Positions 16,336 through 54,298 of a stretch of DNA of 64,000 nt are shown one piece after another. The stretch's first letter is position 1, and each line of letters opens with the position of its first letter. Source of the stretch: Styela clava (lineage: Eukaryota); the NCBI RefSeq assembly GCF_964204865.1, contig NC_135257.1, positions 19,840,001-19,904,000 on the forward strand, in the 5' to 3' direction. A program made the translations under genes and the position numbers. Below the pieces are notes generated by a model. That model ran no database searches and had not been told where the DNA came from. It was given only the letters and a program-made list of their open reading frames with translations.

Positions 16336-18342
16336 ATGGCTGAGAAACCCTCCACATCCCAGGATGACTCGTGTCAAAATAATACCGATACTGAATCAGT
16401 AAATATATCTTCGATAGATCCCAGAAAAGACGGAACCCCTACCGACTTTACAATAAATGTTGAAGACAAATCATTTAATGTTCATCGCGATATAATCATC
16501 GCAAACTCAGAATATTTTAAAGCAATGCTGACCCGAGATAGCATAGAAAATCAGCAAGGATTTGTTGATATGAAAGACGTAAACCCAGATGTTGTGCGTG
16601 AATGCATTGAGTACATGTACACTGGAAATGTGGATGAGGTTTTACTTGACATCGAAAATATTGGAGACACACTACAAGCAGCTGGAATCATGCAACTGAA
16701 TATGATAAGCGGTTTATGTTTTTTGTTTTTAAAAGAAAACTTGAAAACAAAAAATTGTGTTATTGAGGTTTTCAACTTGGTCACGAAATTGAACTTCACT
16801 GTTCTTCAAGACTATGTTCAAGAAGTGTTTGTTGAAACTTATAAATTAGACAGTGTAGCAGAAATGCTTAAACTTTCAAAGTCTGATTTCATTGAGTATC
16901 TTCGTAAGAATGGCTTACGTGATCGTGTCATTGCTTGGGATTGTATTAAGCACTGGATTGAGTATGATCCAGATAACCGATCAGAGCTCCTTTTTGAGTT
17001 GTTGAGCTTGCTTAATTGGGATGAGTTCCCTCCCTATACTATTTTGAGAGGACTTTGGAATAGTTCCATATTCAAGCAATCTCAGCAGTGCTTGGATTTG
17101 GTCCATGAAAAAGTATTCATGGATGTTCACGGTTTTAAAAAAAACTTGTCCATTGAAAGCTTTTTCCTGCTCAAAGAAATGTCTGGAAAATTTAAATTCA
17201 TTCCAAAGGAAATTAAGGAAATGCTTCCTACATTTCTCAAAACACATATAGTCAAACTCTTGACAAAGTCAGATTTCAAAAAGTTAACAGAAGCTGACAT
17301 GATGGCTTTGCTATCTGATCCATCTATAGATGATTTGACCGGAGAAAAGTGGAAATGGTTGGCAGTCAAAACATGGATGAAGCATTCCAGTAACCGCAGA
17401 GTATTTCTGCTAAACCTCATAAAGCACATCAAATTCCAGAATTTACCAAAAAGTTTTCTGAACAACATTTTTAAACACAATTTAATAGAGAAATCATTGG
17501 AGTGCCACCAAATCATATCTGATATGATTACAACAGATAAATCAAGTGTGAAAACTCATCATTTAACTGTTTTATACAATAATGGAGAAATTCGAGACTT
17601 TAACATGTCTACTAAAGAATGGAGTTTAGTTCCGGGAGTTCCACTTGATCCTTATGGACAGGCTTTTACATTCAATAATAGGTTGTGCATTTTGACTGGA
17701 CGAAGGTTGCTCTATATGACAAAAAATCAGAAATGGATAGAAAAGGCCAGTCTGGCGAAAGGTTTCAATATCACCGGTCATGAAAAGATAGTGGCGACCA
17801 GAGACTGCGTTTATGTCATAAAAAAGTTGAAGATGTCATGCTATGACTCTATTTCTGATAGTTGGGATGAGAGCTTGCCCGGACCGGGTGTTGGTTTATT
17901 GGTCTTCTTCACAGCAACAGCATACACAGATAGTTATATATATATATCTGAGAGCAATCAAATGAAACTTTTTGACATTTCAAACAAAACTTGGTCAGGT
18001 GTAATTGTTGTTGCAAATTCATTCAGTTTATCAACAAGTCTGTGTGGTTGTCTGTATTTCACAGACTATAATAGTAAAATTGTAAAAAAGTACTCTGTAA
18101 GATCAGAAAATTGGACTTCATTGCCAAGTGCGCCCGATAAAATTAATTCAGTATTTACTATTAAGGATACTTCAATTGCCATTCGCTGTGGTAAAATCAT
18201 ATATATCTATGACGAATTGTGCGACGTGTGGAACTCCTCGCGCCTAACTATTCCTACTGTGTACAAAAATACTATAAGTGACTCTGATACAGCAGATATT
18301 GTTTCAATTTGCACATATGCTACTAAACAATCACTTAATTAA
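16336..18342 (+). CDS. BTB-BACK-BACK-Kelch copy 2, intronless, 668 aa
   Basis: Uninterrupted ORF with start context aaaATGG, paralogous along its length to copies 1 and 4. Confidence 0.92.
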   Translation: MAEKPSTSQDDSCQNNTDTESVNISSIDPRKDGTPTDFTINVEDKSFNVHRDIIIANSEYFKAMLTRDSIENQQGFVDMKDVNPDVVRECIEYMYTGNVDEVLLDIENIGDTLQAAGIMQLNMISGLCFLFLKENLKTKNCVIEVFNLVTKLNFTVLQDYVQEVFVETYKLDSVAEMLKLSKSDFIEYLRKNGLRDRVIAWDCIKHWIEYDPDNRSELLFELLSLLNWDEFPPYTILRGLWNSSIFKQSQQCLDLVHEKVFMDVHGFKKNLSIESFFLLKEMSGKFKFIPKEIKEMLPTFLKTHIVKLLTKSDFKKLTEADMMALLSDPSIDDLTGEKWKWLAVKTWMKHSSNRRVFLLNLIKHIKFQNLPKSFLNNIFKHNLIEKSLECHQIISDMITTDKSSVKTHHLTVLYNNGEIRDFNMSTKEWSLVPGVPLDPYGQAFTFNNRLCILTGRRLLYMTKNQKWIEKASLAKGFNITGHEKIVATRDCVYVIKKLKMSCYDSISDSWDESLPGPGVGLLVFFTATAYTDSYIYISESNQMKLFDISNKTWSGVIVVANSFSLSTSLCGCLYFTDYNSKIVKKYSVRSENWTSLPSAPDKINSVFTIKDTSIAIRCGKIIYIYDELCDVWNSSRLTIPTVYKNTISDSDTADIVSICTYATKQSLN

Positions 18343-22326: not shown

Positions 22327-23920
22327 ATGGCTGAAAAATCCTCTGCATCCAAGGATTACCCGGATAAAAATGATACCAATACTGAATCAGCAGATTTGCC
22401 CTTGATAGATCCCAGAAAAGAGGGAACCCCTACCGACTTCACAATAAATGTTGAAGACAAATCATTCAATGTTCATCGGGATATAGTCATTGCAAAGTCA
22501 GACTACTTTAAAGCGATGCTAATTCACAATACCAAAGAAAATCAACAAGGATATGTTGATATGAAAGACGTAAACCCAGATGTTGTACGTGAATGCATTG
22601 AGTTAATGTACACTAGAAATGCGGATGAGGTTTCGGTTGACATCGAAAATGTTGGAGACATGCTACAAGCAGCTGGAATTATACAGCTGAATGAGATAAG
22701 AGATTTATGTTCCAAGTGTTTGGAAGAAAACTTGCAAACCAAAAATTGTGTCTAAAAAGTTTGAATTCATTCCAAAGGTGATTAAGGAAATGCTTCCTAC
22801 ATTTTTCAAAACACATATAGTCAAACTCTTGACAAAGTCAGAGTTCAGAAATTTTACAGAACCTGATATGATGGCTTTTCTTTCTGATCCAACTATAGAT
22901 GACTTGACCGGAGAAAAGTGGAAATGGTTGGCAGTCAAAACATGGGTGAACGATGAAAATAATCGGAAAGCAGTTTTGCCCGGACTTCTCAAGCTTATTA
23001 GGTTCCAAACCTTGCCAAAAAAATTTATGAAAGAAGTAATTGAGCATCCTTTAATAAGAGAAGCTTTGGAGAGAATCTTCTATCAAATCTTTACTGATCA
23101 ATTATTTGTAGAATCACCAAGAAATAGGTCAGAAACACATTACCTTGCTGTCCTATATTCCAACAGCAAAATTCGTGCTCTGAACATGTCTACAATGACA
23201 TGGGAAATGGTTCCTGCATTCCATCTTGAATCTCCTTCCATAATGTTTTCGTTCAGTGACAAATTGTGTGTTTTAACTGGAAATAGACTATTTTACCTGA
23301 CCCGAACTCAAAAATGGATAGAAAAGGCTTCAATGGTAAACAAAATTGGTAATTCTGCTAAAGTTGTCACCACTAATGACCATATTTATGTGATTGAGAC
23401 CGCAAGGATGTCATGCTACGATTCTTTAACGGATAGTTGGAATGAGAACCTGCCTGGTGTTGGGTTTTCATCCTTCGGTGCTGCAGTGGCAAATGGTTCA
23501 ATTTATGTTTCTGGATGTTACCAAATGCGGAATTACAATATTGAGAACGAGATTTGGTCACAAACTAGTAAAGTGTCATATGCTTTTAGATTCGCAGCAT
23601 ATTTGCGTGATTGTCTGTATTTCTCAACTGAAAGTGTTGGTTGTTATTACAACATTGTTCTACAAAAATTCAGCCTCAAGAATTCAATTTGGAGTTCTAT
23701 GATTTCTCCCAAATTACCAAATGGTAATTATATTCATGCTCAGTCACTACTCAATATTGATAATTCAATGATTCTTATTAGCACTGATGGATCCATTCTC
23801 AACGAATATTGTTCAACTTGGAACAAAATGAATACTAACATTCCAATATTGTACTGTGACACTAATGACTCATCCCTTAAAGCAAATATTGCTTCAATTT
23901 GTACATATTCTACTTATTGA
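22327..23920 (+). pseudogene. BTB-Kelch copy 3, disrupted by an internal ~422-bp deletion with frameshift (142-aa BTB-only ORF plus an out-of-frame 390-codon BACK2-Kelch ORF)
   Basis: The junction AATTGTGT|CTAAAAAG at ~22750 joins positions equivalent to 16760 and 17183 of copy 2, giving a stop at 22753-22755. The upstream acceptor is mutated (cag>caa) and the promoter-proximal block seen before copies 2 and 4 is missing. Confidence 0.8.
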
Positions 23921-27854: not shown

Positions 27855-29879
27855 ATGGCTGATAAACCCTCCACATCCCAGGATGACTCGTGTCAAAATG
27901 ATATCGATACTGAATCAGCAGATATGCCTTCGATAGATCCCAGAAAAGATGGAACCCCTACAGACTTTACAATAAATGTTGTAGAGAAATCCTTTAACGT
28001 TCATTGCGACATAATAACAGCGAAGTCAGAATATTTCAAAGCAATGCTGACTCACGATACTAAAGAAAATCAGCAAGGATTTGTTGATATGAAAGACATA
28101 AACCCAGATGTTGTGCATGAATGTATTGAGTTCATGTACACTGGAAATGTGGATGAGGTTTCAGTTGACATCGAAAATGTTGGAGACGTACTACAAGCAG
28201 CTGGAATTATACAGCTGAATGAGATAAAAGATTTATGTTTCAAGTGTTTGGAAGAAAACTTGCAAACCAAAAATTGTGTTATTGAAGTTTTCGACTTGGC
28301 CACGAAATTCAACTTTACTGAACTTCAGGGCAATGCCCAAGAAGTGTTCGTTGAAACTTTTAAATTAGACAGTGTAGCAGAAATGCTTGAACTTTCAAAG
28401 CCTGATTTTATTGAGTATCTTCGTAGGCGTCACTTAGCTGATGTTCTCATTGCTTGGGATTGCATTAAGCACTGGATTGAGTATGATCACGATAACCAAT
28501 CAGAGCTTCTTTTTGAGTTGTTGAGCTTGCTTAATTGGGATGAGTTTCCTCCCTATACCTTTCTGAGAAGACTTTGGAATAATTCTGTATTCAAGCAATC
28601 TCAGCAGTGCTTGGATTTAGTTTATGAAAATGTTATTATGGATTTTCTAGGTTTTGAAAAAAACTTGTTGATTGAAAGCTTTTTCCTGCTTAAAGAATTA
28701 TCTGAAATATTCAAATTCATTCCAAAGCAAATCAAAAAAATTCTTCCTACATTTTTGAACACAAACGTAGTCAAACTCTTGGCAAAATCAAAGTTCGAAA
28801 AGTTAACAGAAACTGAAATGATAGCTTTGCTTTCTGATTCATCTATAGATGATTTGACAGGAGAAAAGTGGAAATGGATGGCAGTCAAAACATGGGTGAA
28901 TAATGAGAAAGATCGGAAACCAGTTTTACCTCAACTACTAGAGCTGATTAGGTTTCGAATCTTGCCGAAAAGTTTTATGAAAGAAGTAATTGAGCATCCT
29001 TCAATAAGAGATTCTTTCAAAAGCTATCAAATCATTACCGATGAATTTTTCCTAGAATCACCAAGATCTAGTTCCAAAACACATTACCTAGCTGTCTTAT
29101 ATTCCAACGGGAAAATTCGTGCTCTGAACATGTCTACAATGGCATGGGAAATGGTTCCTGAAATCCATCTTGAGTCTCCTTCCATATTGTTTACGTTTAA
29201 TGACAAATTGTGCGTTTTAACTGGAAATAGACTATTTTACATGACTCAAACTAAAAGATGGATGGGAAAGGCTTCAATGGTTAACAAAATTGGTAATTCT
29301 GCTAAAGTTGTCACCACTAATGACCATATTTATGTGATTGAGACCTCAAGAATGTCGTGCTACGATTCTTTGACGGACAGTTGGAATGAGGACCTGCCTG
29401 GTGTTGGGTTAACAGACTTTGGTGCTGCAGTGGCGAATAGTTCAATTTATGTTTCTGGAGGTCAACAAATGCAGAATTACGATCTTGAAAACAAAATCTG
29501 GTCAAAGGCTAGTGATGTGTCAAATGCTTTCAGATTTGCAGCATGTTCATGTCATTCTCTGTATTTCTCATCTGGAAGTGTTATAACACCTAGTAGTAGT
29601 GGTTATTACAGTGTTATTTTACAGAAGTTCAGCTTTAAGCAATCAAATTGGAGTTCTATTACTTCTCCTGCACAACAAAGTAATTTTTATGCGCAGTCAC
29701 TACTCAATATTGACAATTCAATAGTTCTTATCAACACCGACAAATGCATATACATTTACAACGAATATTGTTCAACTTGGAACAAGATGTCTGCTACCAT
29801 TCCAATATTGTACTGTGACAACGATAACTCATCACGTCAAGCAAATATTGCTTCAATTTGTACATATTCTGCTTATTGA
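27855..29879 (+). CDS. BTB-BACK-BACK-Kelch copy 4, intronless, 674 aa
   Basis: Uninterrupted ORF with a copy-2-like N-terminus and a copy-3-like C-terminal half. Confidence 0.92.
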   Translation: MADKPSTSQDDSCQNDIDTESADMPSIDPRKDGTPTDFTINVVEKSFNVHCDIITAKSEYFKAMLTHDTKENQQGFVDMKDINPDVVHECIEFMYTGNVDEVSVDIENVGDVLQAAGIIQLNEIKDLCFKCLEENLQTKNCVIEVFDLATKFNFTELQGNAQEVFVETFKLDSVAEMLELSKPDFIEYLRRRHLADVLIAWDCIKHWIEYDHDNQSELLFELLSLLNWDEFPPYTFLRRLWNNSVFKQSQQCLDLVYENVIMDFLGFEKNLLIESFFLLKELSEIFKFIPKQIKKILPTFLNTNVVKLLAKSKFEKLTETEMIALLSDSSIDDLTGEKWKWMAVKTWVNNEKDRKPVLPQLLELIRFRILPKSFMKEVIEHPSIRDSFKSYQIITDEFFLESPRSSSKTHYLAVLYSNGKIRALNMSTMAWEMVPEIHLESPSILFTFNDKLCVLTGNRLFYMTQTKRWMGKASMVNKIGNSAKVVTTNDHIYVIETSRMSCYDSLTDSWNEDLPGVGLTDFGAAVANSSIYVSGGQQMQNYDLENKIWSKASDVSNAFRFAACSCHSLYFSSGSVITPSSSGYYSVILQKFSFKQSNWSSITSPAQQSNFYAQSLLNIDNSIVLINTDKCIYIYNEYCSTWNKMSATIPILYCDNDNSSRQANIASICTYSAY

Positions 29880-30174: not shown

Positions 30175-30383
30175 GGCGCTCCAGAAGTGTGTGTACCAAT
30201 ATGGAGGTAACTAATTTTGTTCGCCTACTTTACACCAAGTTGTGTAAAAGGTGTGAAACCTATTGGCAGGGGGTATACTCACTTGGCTATCACAGACAGT
30301 CCCCGAACTCGTAATGGAACTAAAATAAGGGAAAATCGGAATGAAATTATGGCCTAACCTGGTACACCCACTACGGGAGTACC
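30175..30383. mobile_element. Telomere-motif MITE family copy in the 3' flank of copy 4
   Basis: GGCGCTCCAGAAGT...GGGAGTACC termini. Other copies at ~20236-20345, 26395-26550, 34530-34682, 38447-38557, 39900-40112, 41737-41850, 42482-42690, 49746-49860 and 55227-55400. Confidence 0.7.
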
Positions 30384-32325: not shown

Positions 32326-34217
32326 TGGACTATCATGCGATAATCAGAGTCAGCTTTCCCCTTCAAACTGTTATACTATGTATTGTAAGGCTGATAAAAG
32401 AAGTCGAAGTGAATTGCAATCAGGACTATAAATCCATATTTGTAACCTGCTGTTTATATGGCGTCCCAATAATAGATATAGACACTACTTGCTGCAATTT
32501 TGTGAGCTGCATGCAGTTTATATATCTGCTGAACCGAGTTCATCGAACATAAGTGATAATCAGTCGGAGATGAGGAAGAAGAGTTGTCCTTTCACCCTCT
32601 ATTCCTTAGGGCTACATGTTTACAAACTTAAGGGAGGCATAAATTACACATTAACAATCACAAAATGGAGTTTTATTTAAAATCAGCGTTCTTTTCGTGC
32701 AAGTGCGCTGTGAGTTTTTTCCCTGATAATTTGGTGAAGCATGAACAAAAAGTTTGGAAACAGCTAATACCTGCTACACAGGGAAAACATTCAAAATTCT
32801 TAACTTGGCAATAATTGGAAAAACACATCTCATGCAGCTGTCCTAAAATAAAATCAGCTGTCTATGTCAGGGGTGTGCAACCTGCGGCGCAGAAGGAAAA
32901 ATAGTGTGGGCCACGGAAAATTGTCTATTTTGAATGGTGTACAGCGAATGAAGAAGGTTTTCCAATACCTTTGCGTTTGTTATCTATGCTTATGACATTA
33001 CAATGCACAAATCCAAAAAATTGTGTCTGCAACTACTTGAAAGTCTATGTTGAATGAAGGTGAGGCCTACGGTTTCACCCAGTTATCTGTATCAGGCTCT
33101 CCTGTATTAAAGATTGCACATCCCTGGTCTAAATTATAGTTCAATATTACTAATTAGATAAGACTATTCAAGCGATTAGAGATTGTAACTCTTCTTTTTT
33201 CAACTGCTAACACCACCACCACAGAATTATCAAATTAATTTTATTTTTGTAACAAACAATTCAATATCAAGATAACAAAGCATTTCTGTCATATACTTTC
33301 ATTTACTTGTTATAAAAATATTTTAGCAAAAATTTTTACAGTGCATTGATTAGTTAAATTCATTAAATAAGAAAGTGTCAAGGTATTCTTTATAGAGAGA
33401 TAGCTCCAAAGTTAAACACTCAACTCAAATGCTCAACATTATCCAAGAGAATAAGCTTGAAATCGAATTTAAAGTATTCCTATTCAAGCAGTGTTTTATA
33501 TTTATACAGAAACAGCATTATCAATAATCGAATCGAATAATTTAATATTCAATACCAATTTTTGATTTTAAATGCCCAGATTTAAATAAATGATAATTTT
33601 TTTTTGTTAATATGAAACAATTCCAATTTGTGCCAAAAAATGAAAATTCAAAATATTGAATCGATGCCTTCTGCTGTTCACATGGCCCCGTAAAAGCATC
33701 TACTGATACATAACTATTTATAAGGAGTTAACATTTTTGGGAGGACAAGAATCTGACCGGTTCAGCATTGCCTACCCAGTTCATTACACCATTACCGCCA
33801 GTACTTTTCTGAGTGGTTCAGTTACAGTTGATAGATTTGGTTAATGGGCCAGGTCCTCAAAACTCAATATAAAAACTGTAACATAAAAGAGTTTATTCAC
33901 AGTAGGCTAACGTTTATATATTATTAAAGACTCACAAAGTAATAATCAGGGTCATTTTGGTGTTATTTTCATCGATATTTTCAATGAAAATTTTTATCCA
34001 TAAAAACCATAGTCGTAATTTTAGCAGGCACAAATGGGCGGAATGAAACATTTTGGTGTCCTGCAGGCTGTAATTTGAACACCTCTGCTTTAAATACTAG
34101 GACACAATTTATTTATATTCAATTCAAAAATGTTAGCAGGCAAAATTAACATTTTATATTTGAAGGCAATGCAAGCACGATTTGGATGACAATGAAACAG
34201 CTAGAGAAAAGCAGTTC

Positions 34218-37200
34218 TTAGTGGAAATTATACAGCGACATAATCACAGAAAGTAATATTGTTATAAGCGTTGCGGTAGTCTGTATCCCTGAATTCGGGG
34301 GATAAGGTTTCGCTGGCATCGTCTCGAATGCTTTAAATATTTCTGCGTACTTGCTACCTTCTCTGTAATATACCGGTGGTTCTCCCATATTACTGGATAC
34401 TTGCCCTGAAATGTAATAAAATGGTTGGTTAGAGTTTTTTTCGTAAGTGTTTATCAATAGTTTATACTCCAAAAAGTTTTTTTGAATTTGTTGAATGGTC
34501 AAGAATCTGATTCAGATTTTCCTTACCGGTATTTTAGTTTTATTACGAGTTCAAGGACTGTCTGTGTTAGCCAAGTGAATATACCACCTGCCCATAGGTT
34601 TCAGCCCCTTTGCACATCTTGATGTAAAGTAGGCAAACAAAATTAGGTACCTACATATTGGTACACACTCTTCTGGAGCACCACTGCTTTTATATATCCT
34701 TATCCTTACATATCCAAATCTGTGAGAGTTCTCTAAATCGTGAACAAAATGTCCTAACAACTTACCCAAATACCCTCCTGCAGAAGTATCTGTAGTGTTA
34801 TCTGAATCCCAAATATCTATCCATACTGCACCAGTAGGAAAGTATACATCTCTCGCATATTTACCTTAAAAAATACAGAGGCTTTTTAGTGTTTATCCAT
34901 CCATATATATATATGGGGAATTTAGTGAGCACAAATGAAAGCTTGGTCACAAGTATTCAAGTAACATAGGAAAGACAACCCAATTACCCATAAAAGTATA
35001 GTATTGGAATATTTCCTTACCTTCTGTTTAAATTAAGAGAAAATTGGAAATTTCATAACATTGGCGTGTTTTTTGCTGTTACCATAGAGGCGAGTCTCGA
35101 CTTTCTATGAAACTCACATTACTAGGGTGACAGGATAACCCATGTGTGAAACTTTATACAGATCAGTCCAGTCGCTACGGCTTTGACACACAGACAGACA
35201 GAATGACTTGGAATAAGGGAGCGGAGATCCGATAATACTGGAATATTTCCTTACCTTCTGTATATATAGGTGCAACCAACAGATCAGGCCCATACATGTA
35301 CTGGTCCTTAGATATCAGGTCGTCATAGCAATTGGTATCTTCAGGAAATTCAAAGAATAGTGGCCGCTGTACAGGGGTGCTTGTATCGTAGTATTCTTGA
35401 ATGAGATCTCTTGTATAGTTGGCAAGTGAAGTATGGAGCTTAGTGAGGCGTCCGAATCGTTGGAACGTGTAGTCGTCATCGTATATCTGGAAATTCAATT
35501 AGTTTCCAAATTCCAATATTGTATAAATTGCTATATCGTAAAGCAGTGGTTTTCAACCTTTCATTGGTCTGAGGCCCACTTGGGAGGGGCCACGGGCCCT
35601 CGTTGAGAACCACTGATGTAATAATGTTCATGTGACACATTTGCCTTTTCTTATACATGAATGTCTAGCCCATTTATTGTACACCCTAGAGGGGGAACTT
35701 TAATTACTCAAAATGACAAATTTTTAAATGAAAGTGTTCAAAAATGAATATGATTCAAGTGATTCAAAAGTCTACATACTAACACAAATATATTTCTGTA
35801 ATGTTTCGTTGTAGTTAGCCCTCCAGAAACCCAATAAAACCGAAGAATATTCGTTTCATTTCGAAGAATCTCTGACCATATATACCTGCCAATTTTCTTT
35901 TGGTCTGTTTCCCTCATGTGTCCTCATATTTGGTGTAAAAACTGCTGACTCAGCAGATCTAAGAAGAAGTTCTTGGCTACGAACGACACCGTACAATGAA
36001 GTGAAACCTCCAATATCAAAATGTGAGATTCCAACTCCTGAAACAAGAAATAGGGTAGGATAGGATTTTTTTGGGGGGGAGAGGAAATCCAATAAGAGGG
36101 CTCAATCATATGGCGAACCACAGTATCTAGTCCGGTTACCAGTCCATGTCGGGTTTGGGATTAATTAGCCAGTTATTTGTTTTCAGAAGCATGGACTTGA
36201 TGGTGGAGGAAGCCGCAACCGTCCAGTGGTCACATGAACCACCCTGCGACAGCGAGGAGTCAAGCAATCCTCCCGCACATACCCATCCCCACATGGGATT
36301 CGAACCTGGTTTTGCAGGGTAATCAAAGGTTTGGTGACAAGCGTATTTCTAGCGCTTAGCATGTTGCGCCACACCGCCGAGCCAAGAAATGGGTGGGATT
36401 TTACTCAGATAGAGGAAAGTAGATGAAATGGCGTATTTTGATTTTTGAAGTAATTCAGAACAGTTTCCAACTTTCCAAAAAATGCAATAACACTGCTCCT
36501 TAAACAAGAAGGATAATGTTTTTATTTCTATTATGGAGGAGAGGAGTCGATAAAATAAAGTAATCATACAGTAAATATAATAAGTCTAAATAACCAAGTA
36601 ACCATAGATGCAGAGAAATGCTATATTATTCCTCTGAAAGTGTTATACTTTATAAAGCTCAATTTTGTGAATTCAAAATGATTTCCGCCTATTCTTTATT
36701 GAATATGACCGAATACAGAAAATACTCGATAGTCTAGTAGATTTATATTTGAGAGTGGGTTTTTCGATTTTGGGCTCTCCTGTCCAGAATAGTTGGTTTG
36801 TTTACCTGACATTCCAAGTGATAAAGCTGCTGGTATAGTTGATACCAGTCCATCGTCAATTGACCAATCAACATTCTGATCCCCCGCCCACGCACTCATT
36901 GTGTACTTTGCTGATGCAGTGTGCCCCGCCCTCATCCAAATCTGAAAAATGAATTTTTTTTTAATAATGATGTACCTAATTTTTATATAACTATTGACTA
37001 TAAAAGCCCTAAAATGCAGCCACTGATATCTAATGACATGTTAATTAAGCGATACTATTTTTGGAAGGTCTTCATCTAATCCAAATATAAGAATTGTAAA
37101 TTTCCGAACAAAAAATTCAGCACTCTTGTTATGGATTGCTAATTTATTTCTGACTATGTGAAAACTAAATTGTGACCGCTAAAACAGACATGCTTCACCT

Positions 37201-40200
37201 ACATTCGAATTTTAAGGTAGGTAGCTCAAAATGAGATTGGATTTTCATCGAATTCATAGGTCTCATATCTGCAAAAAAACTCACAAAAAATTCTCCATCC
37301 ATATTGCTCTCATCTACTGCTGCCCTGTTTACTTCAGCCCATAATGAAGGCCAGAGATTGTGTAGCTCCTCAGCTGATCTATACAATAAAAAGATTCTTA
37401 TTCCTCAGTAAAAAAAATGATCAAATCTTACAAACAATTTAAGAATAGGCAGTGAGAAAACAAGAGAATGATACTTGTAAATATGAAATATTTATCTTTA
37501 TTTCTAATGTGTATACATTAATACAATACATGTGTATACATTTTATTGGGACACTCTGTATATACAATTTGTATAATATATTCAAAAATACAGAAATACT
37601 ACAGAAATAATATTTTAGATTCTATTCAGAATAGCAGGGGGAATGTGGAATCATATTTGGTACAGGATAGCAATGCTCAAATACAGGATGTCTTAAAATA
37701 AATAGAAAACCCATTTGTTCGATTACCAATTTTGTGGGTTTATTTATTTTGGGACACCCTATATAAAGAATATGTAGTAAATATATGTGAGTAACTCGGG
37801 TAAAGACTTATTCATAGCAAAAAAAGCTTCACCTACCTTCCGTCATGAAATATTTGACCGTCTACTGGTAGATATTCTCCAAAATCCGCCATCCACCCTG
37901 AAACAAGGAATTTAAAATCAGATGGTTTATTTCAGACTAGCAGGTATTTAGTTCAGTGGTTCACAAACTTTTATTGCTCGTGGGCCATGACCCCCTTCTG
38001 GGAGCGTTTAGCACTCATGGCCTCCCTGTTTATCATTCCAGTGGTATTTATAGTGTTATTTTGATTGGTAGGTTACAAATCCCATTATGTTCAAACAATT
38101 CATGATCAATATATTTTGGCTCCAAATTTCATGCCCACCACTAGGGGTGGTTGTGAGTCTGAGCTGCCCCCCCCCCCTCTTTTTGAAATGTAAAAAAAAG
38201 CATGCATAAGCAATTTTTGTAGCTTGAAACGCTCTTAAACCCTAAAGACTCCTGAAAACCCATGTTTTCCAGCCGGACCTGCTTGCAATTTGACATTTTA
38301 GAACTCCCCTCTGGAAATTCGAGGATACGCCCCTGCCCACCACTTTAGCCAGGGTGTAGTAAACTAGGTATGCAATGCCGAACCAGAAAGTCCTAACAAA
38401 AAAATAATAGAGTAAAAGATACGTAAAGCGTCATACAAAAAATAACGTACCTCCAGAAGTATGCGCACCAAGATGGCGCACAAACTGAACATAGTATGTG
38501 TGTACCAGTTGGGATTAAGGTTGTGCGACATCTTGGTGTGCATACTTCTGGAGCACCAAAATAACTTTCTTGAAAGTCAAAACAAATCCTTTATGAATTA
38601 CCTCTAAATCCGACATCTATAAGATTCGTCTTGATGACGTTTTTATACCAGTTGAATGCATCAGGGTTTGTCAGATCCACTGTTCCACAGAAAAACTCCC
38701 CAAAATCACTTACATGGTTGTCACCATCCTTTGATTTCACAAGATAACCTGGAATTTTAATAAATGAAAACAGTTTATTATTTGCAGGGTTTTCTCAACC
38801 AAGAGGAACTTTTCCCTATGGGAATTTTTTTTTTTGGGGGGGGGGGTTATTATTTTGTATTTTGGTGTAGTTTTATAAATAGTGTTTAGTATTATTGTAA
38901 CACAAATTTATAGACAGGTTGGAGATGCTGGGTTCTATTTCCATTACCCCACTCAGGGGAACAATAAACTAAACTCTGCTTTGAGAATATAACCTGGAAT
39001 CTCATATCTGAATGTTGTTTAACCTTCATGAAATAAAATTAGGTGGGCAACAAGAAGAATTTCGATCTCCTTACATATCATTGATGCTTTTATAGAGAAT
39101 CTTCCAGTGTGAAAATGCAACATTTATAACCTAATGAACCTAATTCGGATGGGATTGCATATTCAAGATTATGGTTTTGAATTTCAAACAACGTGTCCAC
39201 TACCTGTTATAGAAAAACTCAAACTGAAAAAATTCTGGTTTAAAATAGCAGCCTCTTGCTTATCAGGTGTGCTGGTAGCAAGCCTTGTTCAGAGAGGATG
39301 CATGAAAATGCCTCAGAAACTCACCCAAGTCACTTGCATTCTCATACAATTCTCCTTTATCATTAAGATATGGGTTTATGTATGCTGTAAAGTAGACTCC
39401 TTCCTTAGCTTTGTCTTGCATGATTTGCCTGATGTTTGGGTAACGGGTCTCGTCGAGTTTCCAATCCCAGAATAATCTTGTCCCAAACGAAGTTGTGATT
39501 TGGCCAACCCAATCTTGAATCCAGATTCCAGATACTTTGACATCGTTTCTGATTGCCTGGTGAAATTTTCAGTAATTAGTTTGTGATGTGAGATATATAA
39601 TGTACAGAGTGCCCCCTTCAAACTTGACTCTACGATCGTGAATTCCACAATTCTTTCTTATTCGAATAAGTTCTGCTCTATTGCTTTCCGTGGAAGATGA
39701 AATTTACTAAATGAAAGTGGAATCAAAGCGAATTCTGTTTATATTCATTTGACCTCTTTTGCTCCTAACAAGACTATGCACGAGCGTTCTGCGATGCCAC
39801 CATAACTAGTCTGAAGTTTGAACCACAAGGCCAGGGGTCACTAACGCGGTGTCTGCGGGCACCAAGTCGCATGTAAGTACCACATAAGTAGCTCGCAGGG
39901 GTACTCCAGAAATATGTGTATCGGGTTAGGGTTAGGCCATAATTTTATTCCGATTTTCCTTATTTTAGTTCTATTATGAGTTTGGGGAATATCTGTGTTG
40001 GCCAAGTGAATATACCCTCTGCCTATAGGTTTCATTCCCTTCACACAACTTGATGTAAAGAAGGCGAACAAAATGAGTTACCACCACTTTCGTAAACACA
40101 CTTCAGGAGCGTCCTCGCAGATCTGTTCGGAAATTAGCTCAAATAACGGCGCTTATCAGTGCCCAGGAATTAACCCTTGGCTTCATAAAGTTTGGTGACC

Positions 40201-43200
40201 CCTGCACAAGGCCAACTGATTAAATATTTTTCTACCTGATCATATATTCCCATCACAGTGTCGGTTCCTCCTTGCAATCCAAGCACTGCTCCTCCATTGT
40301 ATGACCAAGGTGCCAAGGTTGGGCGGGTGAGACCGCCAAGAAGATAATCTGAAATGATTTCAGGGTTAGAATCAGGAATGCTAAAACTGGGAATTTCACT
40401 TTCACTCACTGAGAATGTTGAAAGAGGAGGGTTCTGGAATTTTCAATAGCCAAGTTAGATGATATCAGCTAGTACAGGGCTTCCCAAACTGGGATCCATG
40501 GCTGTGAAAAAAGTCTATTCGATCTTTAATGATTGATTCTAGCGAAAGCCATTACATCATTTTGGTTTAGCGTTGCGGTCGAAGCCATTGCTGTCAAGAC
40601 TTGCCATTGAATCAGATCTAGGAGTTTGCTTGTCACAAAATGTTTGGTAAACCCTGAGCTAGCGGGTTCTACAGAAAAATGCTTTTCTTTACATTTCAAA
40701 AGGTGGGTACCGACTCCCCCCCCCCACCCCTCTCTGGCTATGCCCCTGATGAGCCCTGCTTAGGCCACAGGCATCCAGTTTATATTCCCTGCTAATGCAT
40801 TAGGTCTTATTAGATATGGATGAAAGTCTTTTTACCTGCTGTTCTCATTGTGATATCTTTCCAATCTTTTCCAATATGGAAGTCAAACTGAAATTCTTTA
40901 TCTTCCCAGACTTCAACCTCGCTGAAATCATCTTGCGTGAAGTCAAACACACTAAATAAATCATAGTTGTTATATTTGATCAATAAGTAATAAGATATTA
41001 TTATAAAGGTTGGATACATAGGATAGGGATTCACATATTGATCCCGGGAGAGAGGAAAGTCGATAAGACTGCCTAATCATATGGCAAACCACGGCCTCTT
41101 TTCCGGTTACCAGTCCATGTCGAGTATGGGATTAGTTAGCCAGGTATTTGTTTTCGAAAGCATGGACTTGGGCTCGTTAAGATATATTAAGCACCAGCTT
41201 CATAACGAAATTTTAACAGGACTTTATGATCACACTGTATTATTACAGATTGCTCGCCAAATAGTAGTTTATTCCCTTTGACCAGGGGTTATTAAGGTTT
41301 TAGGACCAGGGGCCAAAACTTTTGCTCATTTAGACAGCGGAAAGTGTAAGTGTGACAATATTTACAGTGTTACAAAAGCAAAAGTGGAAAACAATAAACC
41401 TCGTGCCAAAACTAAATTTAATCGCAGTCTCAACAAATTCCTATTTTTAAGCTAAAACATCAAAAAAATTTTCTAGTTTGCTTGTAGCAGCATCAAGCGG
41501 GCCACAATAAATTACCCAATGGGCCGGATTTGGCCCACGGGTGGTAGTTTGTCCATGCCAGCCCTAACTATCCTCACCTGTACTTTGAAGAAGTCATGAC
41601 AGCTGAATACAGCTTGTCAGTATAGAATAATGGTTCTGGCCAGTATGTGGTGTGGTAATCTCCCCCTGCCCCTCCATCTTGGGAATCCGCCTAGGATAAA
41701 ATGTTCAATTATTATCTTAAGCAGAGGAAAGCTGATATTTTCCTTATTATAGTTCTATTACGAGTTTGGGGACCAGCCAAGTGACTCTCGTAGTATTTGT
41801 ATCTGGAATTATGGCCCAACCCTAACCTGGTACACATATTACGTTCCAGTGTCCATTTTTTCAAAAAATTGAAAATTTCCTTTACTTTCTAGTAAGGGCA
41901 CGTGACCTCGCTTGGGGCAAACTCTTTAATAAAAATAATCACAGCTGGCAAGATGGTTGAAATGTGAATTAAACTTTGCCTTTAGGCCATTTGTTACTTT
42001 TCATTAAAACACTTTTATTAGAAAACCAACACAAAAAAACAATTTTTTTTATAATTTTTTTTGAACAATTTTTTTGTAGTTTCAATATTAACCTTCTCGC
42101 CTGAAAATCCAATATTATTAAAAAAAATAATACTCTGGTTACAGTTTTGGACTTAAATCTCTAACTCACAATGTTGAAATACTTTGATCTATTTAACGCT
42201 TCAACCACTTACTAAGAATGTCATATTCGTTGCTTTGTTTCTCCCCACACCCTGCTCTCTTGTCCAGATAGGGAATGATTTTCCCTTCATATTGAAAAAA
42301 GAAAATTGTTCCCCACCTCCATAAATCTTCTCATTGGCAATTGAAACAAACCTTAACCAGATTCTGAAAGTACACAGTTGTAAATCATGCTGTTAATTAA
42401 GTTTTTATGATTAGGATTTTCATATTTATGCCATGGGAGAAGAAAGGTGAGAAGGTGGTTCAATCCTATGGCAAACCACAATACTCCCGTAGTGTATGTA
42501 CTAGGTTATGGTTAGGGCATAATTTTATTTCGATTTTCCTTATAGTAGTTCTATTACGAGTTCGGGGACTGCCTATGTTAGCCAAGTGAATTTACCCTTT
42601 GCCCATAAGTTTCAGTTCCTTCACACAACTTGATGTAAAATAGGCGAACAAAATTAGGTATCTCCATATTGGTACACATACTTCTGGATTGCCTTTGTAA
42701 TATTATACCTGTCATATCCCGCAGTCCAGTTTCCTATCATCAAACTCAGTCCATCAGCATCTGATGCATTTGTCAGTGTGAGTTTTGCTTCTACCAAACC
42801 TGGTGTGTCTGCATCGGCTGTTGTGTTGAATATAATTATTGCTTTTAAATGACTTATCTGTTATCTTGTGTTATGTGTTTGAAATGGAAATTTATATTTT
42901 TATCCCTCTTTTTGATTGAAAGAGGTTTTACTGTAGGAGGAAATTCCTCTCACACTCACACTCTGCTGTTGAGAGTGAAAGCTGCATAACTCGTTTAAAT
43001 TTCAATCGAATTCAAAATTCTAATCACTTTCCATCTGAACAATTCTTTATGATAAACATTTGACTTACGTGTGCCGCCAATATTCCTAAATGTTACAGAT
43101 TCGCATGTACCAGGTGAAATCAGGCCACTTGTAGAAACTGTGAAATAGGACAGAGCTATTTTTGCTGATGTATAGTCTGTTATCTGAAATAATAAGATAA

Positions 43201-45076
43201 ATGTATACTGTTATCTAGAGTAGATAAAACATGTGTAGTTTATTATCTGACATCGATAATGTATTGCGGTAGTTATCTTTGCTGAAGTGAGTCAGTGATA
43301 TGATATAATAAGATAAGTGTTATCTGACACATATAATGTATTCAAATAATCAGTGGTACAAACCGAAGTTAAAAAATTTCTTAGGGTTTTTCACAACACG
43401 TCAATAAAATGTTTAGTTCCACATAAGAATCACGATTTGAATTTAATTTTCAGTCGTCTTCGTCATTGTTATTCATACTATATATGAATATGTGCAAATT
43501 ACAGTACGTTTTAGTTAGTGTTGAAGTATTACTGATGCCGGCAGATTAGTGGTAAATTCGCTGTTGTTAAGATATGCCCAAATGTTCTAGCTATAAATCC
43601 ACATGTGTCTGTATATTATTAATTTTAAACAACTTCCAACTCAAACCATCTTGTGGTTGGAAAAGTATGTGGTGATAAATGTCTGGGACGAAACGTCCAT
43701 GGGATGGTCAGTCAGTATATTCTTTAAATTAGGGATGGGCAATGTTTTTGGACCAGGGGCCTGAACATTTTGCCTACCTAGACTGGCAGGCCATGTAAGT
43801 GTGACATAAATAGTCAATTTCAACAAATTCTTTGAGTTATTTTCAGCCAAAACATCAAAATTAGGTTTTAGTTTGCTTGTGGCAGCATCAGATGGGCCAT
43901 ATTAAATTACCCAATGGGCCGGATTTGGCCCGCGGGTCGTTGTTCGTCCATGTCAGCCATAAACCAACTAAGATACTTACATTGAAATTTCCTCTGTATT
44001 CGGTGATACCAGTTTTTCCATTTCCAATATGAACTGCAGTGTTGGATGGGGTGTGGCTCAGCAGTAACTCTTGTTTAGGTGTATGCATTGGCGCTAGAAA
44101 AAAATTTTGAGTTTTGAGATCCACTTTGCTGACTTTTAAATGATCCCGCTGTCTCAATCTACATAAAAAAGCTTCCATATAACTAGGCTGACTCTTTATT
44201 TTTACATTTCAAATTTTCGGCGTGTGCGAAGAATGAAGCCAGACCAACTTTATTACTGTATGGCAAGCTATGGTCTCTCGTCTGGTTACCAGTCCAGGTC
44301 GTTTCTGTGAACAGTTAACTAGTTATTTGTCAGATGAATGTACTTGGTGGAGGAACCCACACCAAACCAGCTGTTACATAAGAATAATTTTAGTTTTAAT
44401 GTCTGCTTTGATGACTTTTAATGGTCCTAAATACCCTTAATGTTTTCATACAACAAGGAGGACACTTCATTTATAGATTCTCACATTTATGGGCGAATGA
44501 GAGGAAGGATGCTAGAATGACTCAATCTTACGGCCTCTCGCCTGGTTACCAGACCATGTCAGGTATGAGAATAGGTATCCGGTTATTTGTCAGATGCAAG
44601 GACTGGTGGAGGAAGCCATAAGCGTCAAGGTGTTACGCGAACCACTTTGCAGCGGTGATGAATTCAGCTAACCTCTCACATATAATTATTCCCCACATGA
44701 TTCGAACAATGCATAGTAACCAGAAGTGCTTTGGCAAGCAACCCACCACCTCACCCAGGGTGTATTAGATTGGGTGAGCAATGTCAAACCGAAATAATTC
44801 CTTTTAAAAAAACTGTAGCCCCATATATATCATCAAATATCAGAAGCCGTTTGTGTGGAGCCTTGTTTAGAGCAAAAGACATATATATATATATATACTT
44901 TGTATAAAACAATAACCTTGGTCCACCAAATTCAAGGTCAAGGTCTGAGCAACTTCATCATAGATCAATCGAAATCTTGCGCTCCCACTTTGTGAGTCAA
45001 CAGTACATTCTTCTTCTGCACAAATGATTTGTTTGGTCATAAAAAGGATTATTGTGATGAAACAATGGTACTTCAT
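34218..45076 (-). CDS. yihQ: GH31 sulfoquinovosidase-like alpha-glycosidase (YihQ homologue), 17 exons, 776 aa, with signal peptide and putative GPI anchor
   Basis: Exons on the minus strand, all GT-AG and phase-consistent, total 2331 nt: 45076-44917, 44093-43981, 43183-43069, 42817-42709, 42363-42213, 41690-41578, 40951-40836, 40348-40236, 39556-39325, 38748-38602, 37897-37837, 37378-37285, 36941-36806, 36037-35886, 35486-35255, 34864-34766, 34405-34218. Motifs are colinear with E. coli YihQ: RIWLR..IYGGGEQFS..WTREQGVGRNK, AGGDY, GLQGG, WIQDW, FGTRLFWDW, YINPY, GWMADFGEYLP (nucleophile), WAGDQNVDWS.DDGL (acid/base), MRTHEGNRP, PPVYYR. Confidence 0.92.
36056..36383 (-). mobile_element. tRNA-derived SINE, full length, in intron 13 of the GH31 gene
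   Basis: Reverse complement of the 31038 family (GGGATTCGAACC, TAGGATAGGA tail). Partial copies at ~41020-41170, 44255-44750 and 63745-63777. Confidence 0.8.
43180..43325. promoter_or_regulatory. Dense GATA-site array in intron 2 of the GH31 gene (candidate enhancer)
   Basis: TTATCT at 43180, 43211, 43243, 43273 and 43320; AGATAA at 43195, 43222 and 43311; CGATAA at 43254; TGAGTCA (AP-1) at 43288. Confidence 0.5.
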
Positions 45077-51443: not shown

Positions 51444-54298
51444 GTTTGCTGTCTATGCTGTTGTATTATCGCTACTTCCATCCTTCAAGCAAGAGAAAAT
51501 GTCACTGTTGCATGCTCTACTACCATCTAGTGTATCGTTTGTGCCCATGTAACAATGCCACTGCATTTCACGGAACTCCATATAAAAGCGCTCATCAAGA
51601 TTTTGCAGATTCTGAGAACGACTCCAGCTTTGAAAATTACGATCCTGTAAGTGCCACTCGCGATCACGAACAAATTCCTAGATTTACAGAAAATCGGAAA
51701 ACAGCGAAAAAAGAGACACTAGATGGCGGCAATGAATGGGATTCTGATAGCGAATATGGCGAAAATCTTCAAGGGAAAAAATATGAAAAAGCAAAAAAAT
51801 TTGAAAAGGGAAGAAAATGGGCACATAAAACACAACGACTAGGTCTTGAAGTTTCAGAGGAATATGAAAATGACAAAAATACTTTACTTATGCCAAAACC
51901 GAGAGCCACGTCTACTCCTGGAGACGAAATTGAAGAAAAATTTGTCAAAAAATATCAAAATTTACACAAGTTAACCCAAAATAAAGGCGTAATTTTTGAA
52001 GACAGGCCAGTATCATTCACATCTTTATCAAGTAGTACAGAGTCTTTTGATAACAGCAAATATTTGACTTGTCCAAACAAATCACCTGATAATGTTGCTT
52101 TCACTGATATGGTGACCACGACCCCTACTGCTTTGAAAAACCTTCCCGGGGCCAACAACACTCCCGGTACAAATAAGGGAAATTCCACTCTTGTGAGAGA
52201 GTGGGTAAAGAAGGCTCAAGATATGTACGGCCCAAAAAGTTCGGATGATAAAAATGGCGATGGTTCTGAAGCGGCAGGCGGTGCGTATAACGATTTTGGA
52301 ACCCTTGGAACACGTCATGCTACTAAAGATGAGCGTGACTTCATGGAAGCACATTTTGGGGATCCCGCTTCAGGTCCTAGCGGAAGAAGAGACATCCTAA
52401 GATTAAAATCATTTAATAAAAAAGACCGACAGCCGCCTAAAAAGCGCGCTAAAAAGAGAAGAAAAAGTGATTATACTGTATCTGATTTAAGAAACACATT
52501 TAGAGAAGCATTCGGTTTTCACGCAGTGGAACAAGATCAAGTGTCTGAAAGCGACGAAGAAATTGCGAAACAAACAAAAATCATCAAAAAACAACCGAAC
52601 AGGAAAATCAAAACGAAGACTTGGGCAGAGACTGAAATTGACCCGGTTACCGTAGAAACCAAACAAAAACAAGCTGCAAATTTAAAACCAGTGAATAATT
52701 CTCACAAAATTGATTTTGTTCCACAAAGAGTGAATGTTATATTAGCTAGAGTGGACAAGCCCCCCACAATGGAAGACCTACTATCATATAAATGTAATTC
52801 CAAAACCAATACTGCTACTTTGAATAAAGATAAACTTGAGATGGAAAATTTCGACGAAAATAAACTTGCAAACGATGGAATGGTTAACTCTGAAATTGGA
52901 TGTCCAGTTCCGATAGATCAGCTCAAAATTGATATGGAGAATCTACATGGAACTCCAATAACAGTTCCGCTGAGCTCAGCAAATTTCGACAGCCAATATG
53001 ATAACCATGGACTTGGTGTTTCAGATTCAAATCGCCAAATTCAAAATAATAGAGACGAGCCTTGCGTCGTGTACCACAATGTTCATCAATATATAGATGA
53101 TGGTAGCCCTTCTTATGGTGGTAAAAATCTTGAATCGACTAATAATTTCACCACTTGTATAGATGAGGTGGTCGGAGTTACAAGATTAACAAGAGACTCC
53201 TTGCACCTCCTTGAAAATGGAGAAGAAAGATCTGAGATGAATGCTCATGTTCCGCCATTAGAGGATGGTAAAATACGAAAAGTAGATGGACAGACTAAAA
53301 TAAAATGGAGAAAGCCTTCTAATGATTTGGATTCTTCAAACGGGTCTCAAGATAATAAAAGAAATGGTAAAGATGGAAAAAATAGTGGTGGCAATACAAT
53401 AGAGAAATCTGTGTATGATAATTTAACAGCTTCTATCTTAGTTGGGCCTGATATGGCTTCGAATTTCGAAGGACTGTCAAATTTGGAAACGAAGGATGAA
53501 AGTGCGAAAACGCAAAATTCTTGTGTCAATTCTGATAGTGATGATGTGTTTGGCCCTGTTATATGTATACAAGGGGGGAAAGTAATGATCAAGCATAGAG
53601 ATATTGATGATAATGACCTTTCTGAGAAACATAAGTTAAATTTGAACCCTGCAATTTGTGATCAGGTTGATCAAAATGAAAAACTCATCTCGAGCTCTGG
53701 ATTTGATGCTGAAAAAATGAAGAATGAAAATAAACCGGATGTGGAGCTCAATTCTGGATGTAATGCTCCAGCGATCAAAAAGACTTCAGACATTTTGAAA
53801 CCGGCTTGTAATGGAACAATGCGTCGAGATAGGGTTGAATATTTATATAAAATTGGGCGCAGCGGGCTCAAAAAAGCGGTTCAAGATTCCCCTGCAAGAA
53901 AAAGACTTTTGTTTAAAAAAGATGACAAATGGTGTGACGAAAGTGACCTAGAATCTAATTTTCACGAAGAAAATGAAGTAATAAAGCAAAATTGCAACAA
54001 AAATGATAAAACATCACCAAGAAATAAAAATTCCACAAAAAATGAGCAAAGAGGTGAAAATTCAACCCATAAAGCTAAAAAATCTGGCAACAAAGAGATG
54101 GAGCATAGCATTGAAGCTTTAGGAAAGAGTATGGAAGGAGTCGTAGACGGAGGCGAGAATTATATCATCCATATTCATGGTGATGGTAAAAAAAAACGGA
54201 GCAGAAAATCTTTAAAGTCTTTAGGGAAAGAAAGAAGCATCAAAGAAAAATCTTTTCCAAAACAAAGAAGAACACTAGGTTCCATTGAGAATCATTAG
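51444..54298 (+). CDS. XKR: XKR terminal coding exon: last TM helix (GLLSMLLYYRYFHP) plus a ~940-aa low-complexity cytoplasmic tail
   Basis: Acceptor tttttacag|GT in phase 1 completes the Gly codon from the previous exon. MLLYYRYFHP is the XKR last-TM signature. The 950-codon ORF ends at TAG 54296-54298 and is K/E/D/N/S-rich. Confidence 0.88.

Follow-up and report, generated by a model that had tools for sequence, protein, structure and literature searches.

A 64,000-nt stretch of the genome of the ascidian Styela clava (contig NC_135257.1, positions 19,840,001 to 19,904,000 of the forward strand; hereafter the window) contains an intron-rich gene for a homolog of YihQ, a bacterial sulfoquinovosidase (SQase) of glycoside hydrolase family 31 (GH31). 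Judged from its sequence, the gene is a new ascidian addition to the already named animal sulfoquinovosidase-like proteins, with a phenylalanine variant of the substrate pocket and a C-terminus of the glycosylphosphatidylinositol (GPI) type. We favor, at a probability of about 0.55, a GPI-tethered, luminal GH31 enzyme that would free sulfoquinovose (SQ) from dietary sulfoquinovosyl diacylglycerol (SQDG) or SQ-glycerol, a sugar that the animal itself would not catabolize.

Few organosulfur compounds are as abundant as the sulfoquinovose lipids, and the task of degrading them has been assigned to bacteria. If the proposed function is correct, filter-feeding sea squirts would cut dietary sulfolipid at the gut surface, forming an entry point of the marine sulfoquinovose cycle, and would feed their gut microbes with the sulfosugar. 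The gut-surface idea has already been published as a prediction, so the question does not originate with this locus. What it adds is an ascidian case, a natural pair of tyrosine and phenylalanine paralogs within one genome, and a pocket change from tyrosine to phenylalanine that has recurred at least six times in animals. Together they offer a direct, cheap test of the role of the third sulfonate-binding residue.

Results

The window gene encodes a YihQ-like GH31 protein

The gene lies on the minus strand between positions 45076 and 34218 (all coordinates are positions within the window unless they carry a contig prefix such as G000:C8). Our rebuilt model has 17 exons, each junction of the GT..AG type, which join into 2280 nt of coding sequence for 759 amino acids without an internal stop (Table 1). 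We chose the junctions with a hidden Markov model (HMM) of 30 animal orthologs, scoring every frame-compatible GT/AG pair at each one. Most leave no ambiguity: their donors read gtaagt or gtgagt, and their cag acceptors are pyrimidine-rich. The weak places are the junctions between exons 1 and 2 and between exons 3 and 4, and the donor of exon 4, where we favor 42709 over 42682 because position 42688 marks the start of a dispersed repeat copy. An earlier analysis of the letters (the sequence-only reading) also counted 17 exons; its protein of 776 residues is 17 longer than ours, a difference that presumably sits at these three weak places. The joined protein was used for alignment, residue mapping and trees, while database, family and structure comparisons were made exon by exon.

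Open reading frames on this strand match the GH31 model PF01055 (best 1.5e-7, the others weaker) and the C-terminal domain PF21365 (3.5e-12). Together with both catalytic aspartates, these matches make the protein a member of GH31. The piece at 35856-36092 aligns with the sulfoquinovosidases of the Protein Data Bank (PDB), namely 5AED/5AEE, 5OHS, 6PNR and 8R56, at 3e-16 to 8e-15; the next GH31 structure follows at 0.27. Of these, 5AED/5AEE is E. coli YihQ and 5OHS is Agrobacterium SmoI. For nine of the 17 exons the best NCBIfam model is the YihQ equivalog NF007746, and these exons are colinear with positions 118-621 of its 683. Their scores add up to 465 bits, a sum of separate exon scores rather than a whole-protein score like the cut-off of 553 bits; E. 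coli YihQ itself reaches 1247 bits. Models for alpha-xylosidase and MalA score far lower or not at all on the window exons. The spliced protein contains all three domains of YihQ: the N-terminal β-sandwich, the (β/α)8 catalytic domain and the C-terminal β-sandwich. The order of the exons on NF007746 and the alignment thus bear out the colinearity with YihQ claimed by the sequence-only reading. By the sequence models and the tree, the protein is closer to YihQ than to other GH31 subfamilies.

We mapped the active site against E. coli K-12 YihQ. The nucleophile D405 corresponds to D444 (WMADFGEY) and the acid/base D472 to D512 (WAGDQ), at exactly the codons where both had been placed before. Also kept are Q262 (Q301), Q288 (Q327, codon 39515-39517), R301 (R340, 39476-39478), W304 (W343, 39467-39469) and H537 (H577, 35916-35918), with R340 and W343 in the motif FGTRLFW. 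The three motifs that had been cited for an SQase pocket (GLQGG, WIQDW and FGTRLFW) are all present, but the pocket is not fully canonical. Y508 of YihQ is F548 in the window protein (codon TTC, 36003-36005), which makes the pocket QQRWF instead of QQRWY and gives the signature QQRWDDFH. Uchida et al. (bioRxiv 10.64898/2026.02.11.705467, February 2026) summarize R301, W304 and Y508 as the sulfonate-recognizing residues; two of the three are therefore kept. Because of F548, we class the protein as a homolog within the SQase clade and not as a proven SQase.

The protein belongs to a known animal clade

A HMMER search of 1.84 billion representatives with one exon returned full-length animal proteins, and relatives in Argopecten, Panulirus, Amphibalanus, Lytechinus and Patella carry the NCBI name "sulfoquinovosidase-like". 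With the scallop protein as query, a word-indexed search extended the list to oysters, mussels, many gastropods, Lingula, Watersipora, hemichordates, a crinoid, sea stars, urchins and amphioxus. In a systematic search of animals, Uchida et al. found SQase homologs in 65 species from nine phyla, including Chordata, and they credit Speciale et al. 2016 with having noticed animal homologs; their main text makes no mention of tunicates. They report SignalP signal peptides in most of the animal homologs, NetGPI-predicted GPI anchors in many molluscs and also in some chordates, expression mainly in digestive organs, and no downstream SQ-degrading enzyme in Tridacna. An interpretation in terms of digested sulfolipid and gut microbes is likewise theirs.

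The novelty implied by the sequence-only reading does not hold, since RefSeq already names such animal proteins and the preprint already describes signal peptide, GPI anchor and digestive expression. With the same features and the same interpretation reported there, that reading matches rather than exceeds the literature. Its suggestion that the enzyme would act on dietary sulfolipid agrees with what Uchida et al. reached independently for other invertebrates, and to that extent may stand; it is not new.

The window protein falls inside the animal clade both in a 65-row LG+G4 tree (SH-aLRT 100) and in a 48-row LG+C20 tree (99), and the named bacterial YihQ sequences lie outside that clade in both. 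The outgroups were these named bacterial YihQ-type sequences, with no characterized non-SQase GH31 outgroup among the rows. The phylogeny that had been suggested as a check therefore groups the protein within the YihQ/sulfoquinovosidase clade and, inside it, with the animal "sulfoquinovosidase-like" proteins. Uchida et al. count as animal SQases those sequences with one PF01055 domain only, no more than one of seven key residues substituted and a grouping with animal sequences; with one substitution (Y508F) and its place in the animal clade at 99-100 SH-aLRT, the window protein falls under that definition. Its end branch is long (0.97-1.15), and neither tree settles its position among the animals: LG+G4 puts it in a set with protostome sequences (96*), and C20 gives no resolution. 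We attribute the protostome grouping to the long branch and have set it aside as a sign of taxon.

A canonical paralog and a recurrent tyrosine-to-phenylalanine change

A second sulfoquinovosidase-like gene of the same genome (Table 1) encodes a protein 42% identical to the window protein, and only two intron positions are exactly shared. Its signature is the canonical QQRWDDYH. The last exon in our model ends ...LRKGGYSLIRQYE and contains no hydrophobic tail; this paralog is possibly soluble. Upstream of it are several candidates for a first exon with a signal peptide, none of them confirmed. The two paralogs are sisters under LG+G4 (95*, 31 rows) and not under C20.

Among 53 named animal sequences, eight have the signature QQRWDDFH and another two combine the phenylalanine with loss of R301. 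Both of the latter are caenogastropod members of the phenylalanine clade, P0193 (Nucella lapillus) and P0208 (Littorina saxatilis), which read QMKW and QLTW for QQRW and are probably no longer sulfoquinovosidases. Elsewhere, phenylalanine beside an intact R/W pair occurs only in two unnamed, unusually long sequences, P0117 (QQRWDDFH) and P0126 (EQRWDDFH); among the sequences compared, none of those with bacterial names has this combination. On the 48-row tree, the phenylalanine needs at least six independent changes. Forcing all such rows into one clade, a group defined after the tree was seen, costs 448 log-likelihood units (p-AU 3e-62; LG+G4, 31 rows). Lytechinus, Babylonia and Branchiostoma have one tyrosine and one phenylalanine copy each, as does the Styela clava genome. 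An ordinary GH31 alpha-glucosidase of this genome also carries phenylalanine at the Y508 position (DICGF). The change thus goes part of the way back to what is general in GH31.

These observations bear on the possibility that the F548 copy is a neofunctionalized paralog of shifted or broadened specificity and that the tyrosine copy is the true sulfoquinovosidase. The F548 copy might then act on some other alpha-glucosyl lipid head group, whether anionic or neutral, or work at the membrane with a lower affinity for the sulfonate. Such a division of labor would fit the presence of two diverged paralogs that differ in this residue, the matching pairs in the three other genera, the repeated origin of the phenylalanine together with the rejection of a single clade and the lack of named bacterial cases, the further loss of R301 in the two caenogastropods, and the residue found in the ordinary alpha-glucosidase. 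It sits poorly with the direct sulfonate and hydroxyl contacts, since R340, W343, Q327 and Q301 are all kept, which argues for continued sulfonate binding. Tyr508, moreover, is reported to act only through a bridging water. We consider a neofunctionalized F548 copy, the chief rival reading, possible, though unlikely.

More speculative still is the idea that the Tyr508-to-Phe change is a repeatedly selected switch. A duplicated SQase would have split into tyrosine and phenylalanine copies in at least five lineages (ascidian, sea urchin, amphioxus, caenogastropod and possibly others), the phenylalanine copies having a distinct substrate or working condition. We think this doubtful. If true, the substrate of the phenylalanine copies could be some other alpha-glucosyl glycerolipid of algae, anionic or neutral, met at the membrane surface, and these copies would represent a second, undescribed glycolipid-hydrolase activity of animals.

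The protein has a signal peptide-like start and a GPI-type end

The predicted N-terminus reads MKYHCFITIILFMTKQIICA, followed by EEE, and has a 9-residue hydropathy maximum of 2.96. It comprises a basic n-region (MKYH), an h-region (CFITIILFM) and I/A at positions -3/-1 before EEE, and the signal peptide is likely to be cleaved after IICA. Orthologs reach values of 2.2-3.9 where their first exon is present, compared with 0.44 for E. coli YihQ. At the other end of the protein, PPNSG is followed by the spacer IQTTAT and the hydrophobic end LITILLSVIMSLYNFH, with a candidate omega site at N735/S736/G737. Here the 12-residue hydropathy maximum is 2.71 (E. coli YihQ, 0.90), and the hydrophobic stretch finishes four residues before the terminus without a basic tail. 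This end aligns with hydrophobic tails in the orthologs from Mytilus, Lottia, Patella and Watersipora. In the same hydropathy comparison, an end of this kind is found in mollusc, Watersipora and one amphioxus ortholog and is absent from crustacean, Lingula, crinoid and bacterial proteins; in two amphioxus proteins a helix takes its place, and RNRKRK comes after it. The model also contains seven N-X-S/T sequons, the number counted in the sequence-only reading, and the hydropathy of its two ends, similar to that of mollusc orthologs, is consistent with the signal peptide and GPI-type C-terminus described there.

The C-terminal end could instead be something other than a GPI signal, in which case the product would either sit in the membrane, by a single pass or as a tail-anchored protein, or be a soluble enzyme, lysosomal or secreted, that keeps its tail or has it clipped. 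The hydrophobic stretch ATLITILLSVIMSLYNF, at about 17 residues, is a borderline transmembrane helix, and Uchida et al. describe transmembrane helices in some chordate and echinoderm orthologs and deem lysosomal targeting possible. However, the transmembrane forms of amphioxus end in YRNRKRKTS, whereas the hydrophobic end of the window protein has no charged cytosolic residues after it. The small residues N-S-G and a polar spacer of six residues also precede that end, as suits a GPI signal, and the alignment with mollusc tails points the same way, although the molluscs with NetGPI predictions in the preprint are not necessarily these species. We regard a non-GPI end as quite improbable.

The gene is an intact resident of the ascidian genome

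Dispersed repeats of at least four families occur in the introns of the gene and also in the flanking intergenic DNA. One of them, about 207 nt long (Table 1), gave 2994 first-look candidates genome-wide, and the 40 that were scored have 85-91% identity and are spread over many chromosomes. The three intronic copies of this repeat point the same way, opposite to the intergenic copy; the element has the look of a short interspersed nuclear element (SINE) or a miniature inverted-repeat transposable element (MITE). The contig is chromosome-sized, and the neighboring genes are of the animal BTB-Kelch type. Given the host repeats in the introns, the size of the contig, the placement in the animal clade and the Kelch neighbors, we conclude that the gene is an intact, vertically inherited resident of the ascidian genome, and neither a contaminant nor a recent transfer.

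Bacterial contamination, recent horizontal transfer and a dead copy are effectively refuted: although the closest characterized relatives are bacterial and animal orthologs (the figure is not for the window gene) are 40-44% identical to bacterial homologs, the gene has 16 GT-AG introns with a host repeat of thousands of genomic copies, lies on a contig of 23.8 Mb, belongs to a well-supported animal clade and is free of stops and frameshifts over its entire coding length. The argument from the 16 introns had been made by the sequence-only reading, and it stands. A second argument, that the gene is nested inside another animal gene, does not: the flank at 29.9-34.2 kb has no coding-looking open reading frames, and no conserved coding exon was found in the other flank up to 51.4 kb.

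The genome has no match to YihS or YihT

Queries from the annotated E. coli K-12 yih locus were used to look for downstream sulfoglycolysis, another check proposed with the sequence-only reading. Neither YihS nor YihT had a match in the genome, in a search that covered the Embden-Meyerhof-Parnas (EMP) pathway only and not the enzymes of the Entner-Doudoroff (ED), transaldolase (TAL), transketolase (TK) and sulfoquinovose monooxygenase (SMO) routes. The sole match to YihV was an intronless gene of 309 amino acids at G000:C9:13106238-13107167 (+). It scores 333 bits against TIGR02152, a bacterial-type equivalog model with a cut-off of 300, and is by this model an ordinary ribokinase.

Discussion

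We propose that the protein would enter the endoplasmic reticulum, become N-glycosylated and receive a GPI anchor near N735-G737. The anchored enzyme would face the lumen on the apical side of digestive or pharyngeal cells. There it would hydrolyze SQ from phytoplankton SQDG or SQ-glycerol in the diet by the retaining, double-displacement GH31 mechanism, which uses the two aspartates. The freed sulfosugar would probably not be catabolized by the host, as no YihS or YihT homolog was found in the genome.

Several points weigh against this luminal, GPI-tethered SQase. Animal SQases have so far been described without an enzyme assay, according to Uchida et al., and one of the three sulfonate-recognizing residues, Y508, is not conserved in the window protein. 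The signal peptide and GPI calls come from hydropathy and rule-of-thumb checks. Exon 1 and the junctions from exon 1 to 2, 3 to 4 and 4 to 5 are themselves predictions, and a lysosomal or simply secreted fate is conceivable for the product.

Other features of the window and genome

Four intronless BTB-BACK-Kelch genes form a tandem array on one side of the SQase homolog (Table 1). The third consists of two adjoining open reading frames, one with BTB and one with BACK-Kelch, and its split suggests a frameshift or a pseudogene. For the fourth, the only public relatives found were two Styela clava proteins with 42% and 37% identity. On the other side, an open frame of 950 amino acids at 51446-54298 (+) is rich in K, E, D, S and N, has no Pfam match and lies in a stretch of strong A-over-T skew (0.195). 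A single large exon, coding for part of a low-complexity protein of nuclear type, is the probable explanation.

Ordinary GH31 genes occur elsewhere in the genome. A single open frame of 546 amino acids at G000:C16:19452405-19454045 (+) covers most of a GH31 alpha-glucosidase (PF01055, 4e-97; MalA-like, 3e-81), and an uninterrupted exon of this length is unusual for the genome. Its product is 27% identical to E. coli YihQ over the catalytic core. At G000:C8:6863000-6958400, dense PF01055 exon matches on both strands extend over about 95 kb and probably mark a cluster in which ordinary GH31 alpha-glucosidase genes stand in tandem.

Table 1. Positions of the exons of the sulfoquinovosidase-like gene and of related or neighboring features.
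Feature	Position	Strand	Remarks
Exon 1	44917..45076	-	start codon at 45076, first ATG after an in-frame stop; residues 1-20 at 45017-45076; donor 44917 uncertain, alternatives 44954 and 44927
Exon 2	43981..44069	-	N-terminal β-sandwich domain, ...GNGKTGITEYRGNFN; HMM 5e-5; weak acceptor (aaacaag), strong donor (gtaagt)
Exon 3	43069..43183	-	tttcag acceptor, gtaagt donor; colinear with orthologs in the alignment; weak HMM support
Exon 4	42709..42790	-	donor uncertain, 42709 or 42682
Exon 5	42213..42363	-	RIWLRF...GGGEQFS...WTREQGVGRN; HMM 7.7e-26; NF007746 67 bits, positions 118-166
Exon 6	41578..41690	-	HMM 4.5e-10; NF007746 20.8 bits
Exon 7	40836..40951	-	VFDFTQDDFSEVEVWEDK...; junction scoring and alignment
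Exon 8	40236..40348	-	LGLQGG; Q301 (YihQ Q262), codon 40272-40274
Exon 9	39325..39556	-	sulfonate-pocket residues Q327, R340 and W343; HMM 1.2e-33; NF007746 98 bits
Exon 10	38602..38748	-	NF007746 53 bits; ortholog HMM and junction scoring
Exon 11	37837..37897	-	WMADFGEY; nucleophile D444, codon 37884-37886
Exon 12	37285..37378	-	ortholog HMM, junction scoring, NCBIfam comparison
Exon 13	36806..36941	-	WAGDQ; acid/base D512, codon 36879-36881; NF007746 56 bits
Exon 14	35886..36037	-	HFDIGGFTS with F548; MRTHEGN with H577; NF007746 72 bits; PDB alignment to 5AED/5AEE
Exon 15	35255..35486	-	GH31 C-terminal β-sandwich, PF21365 3.5e-12
Exon 16	34766..34864	-	ortholog HMM and junction scoring
Exon 17 with stop codon	34218..34405	-	GPI-type signal at 34221-34301
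AATAAA poly(A) signal	34108..34113	-	about 105 nt past the stop codon; read directly from the sequence
Second sulfoquinovosidase-like gene	G000:C8:18885580-18892242	+	at least 13 exons
Dispersed repeat, about 207 nt	39902-40108, 34471-34677, 42482-42688 (intronic); 30175-30334 (intergenic)
BTB-BACK-Kelch tandem array	7631-9700, 16336-18342, 22327-23920, 27855-29879	-, +, +, +	four intronless genes

Comparison with known systems

With E. coli YihQ and Agrobacterium SmoI, the window protein shares the three-domain architecture, both catalytic aspartates and the counterparts of Q262, Q288, R301, W304 and H537. It differs from them in the phenylalanine that replaces Tyr508, the signal peptide-like start, the sequons, the GPI-type tail and the 16 introns of its gene. 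Nor is there a sulfoglycolysis operon or a host match to YihS or YihT, and the activity of the window protein is a predicted one.

The ordinary animal GH31 alpha-glucosidases, of the lysosomal GAA and sucrase-isomaltase type, have the same fold and the same catalytic pair of aspartates. The phenylalanine after D-I-x-G is also shared with the copy at G000:C16:19452405-19454045. Unlike the window protein, these enzymes do not have the R301/W304 sulfonate pocket.

The third comparison is with the animal SQases of Uchida et al. The window protein belongs to the same clade, has the same combination of predicted signal peptide-like and GPI-type ends as many molluscs and some chordates and the same proposed role, and, as far as the EMP enzymes go, likewise comes without a downstream pathway. 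It stands apart from them as an ascidian protein on a long branch, with a phenylalanine variant of the pocket and a canonical paralog on another chromosome.

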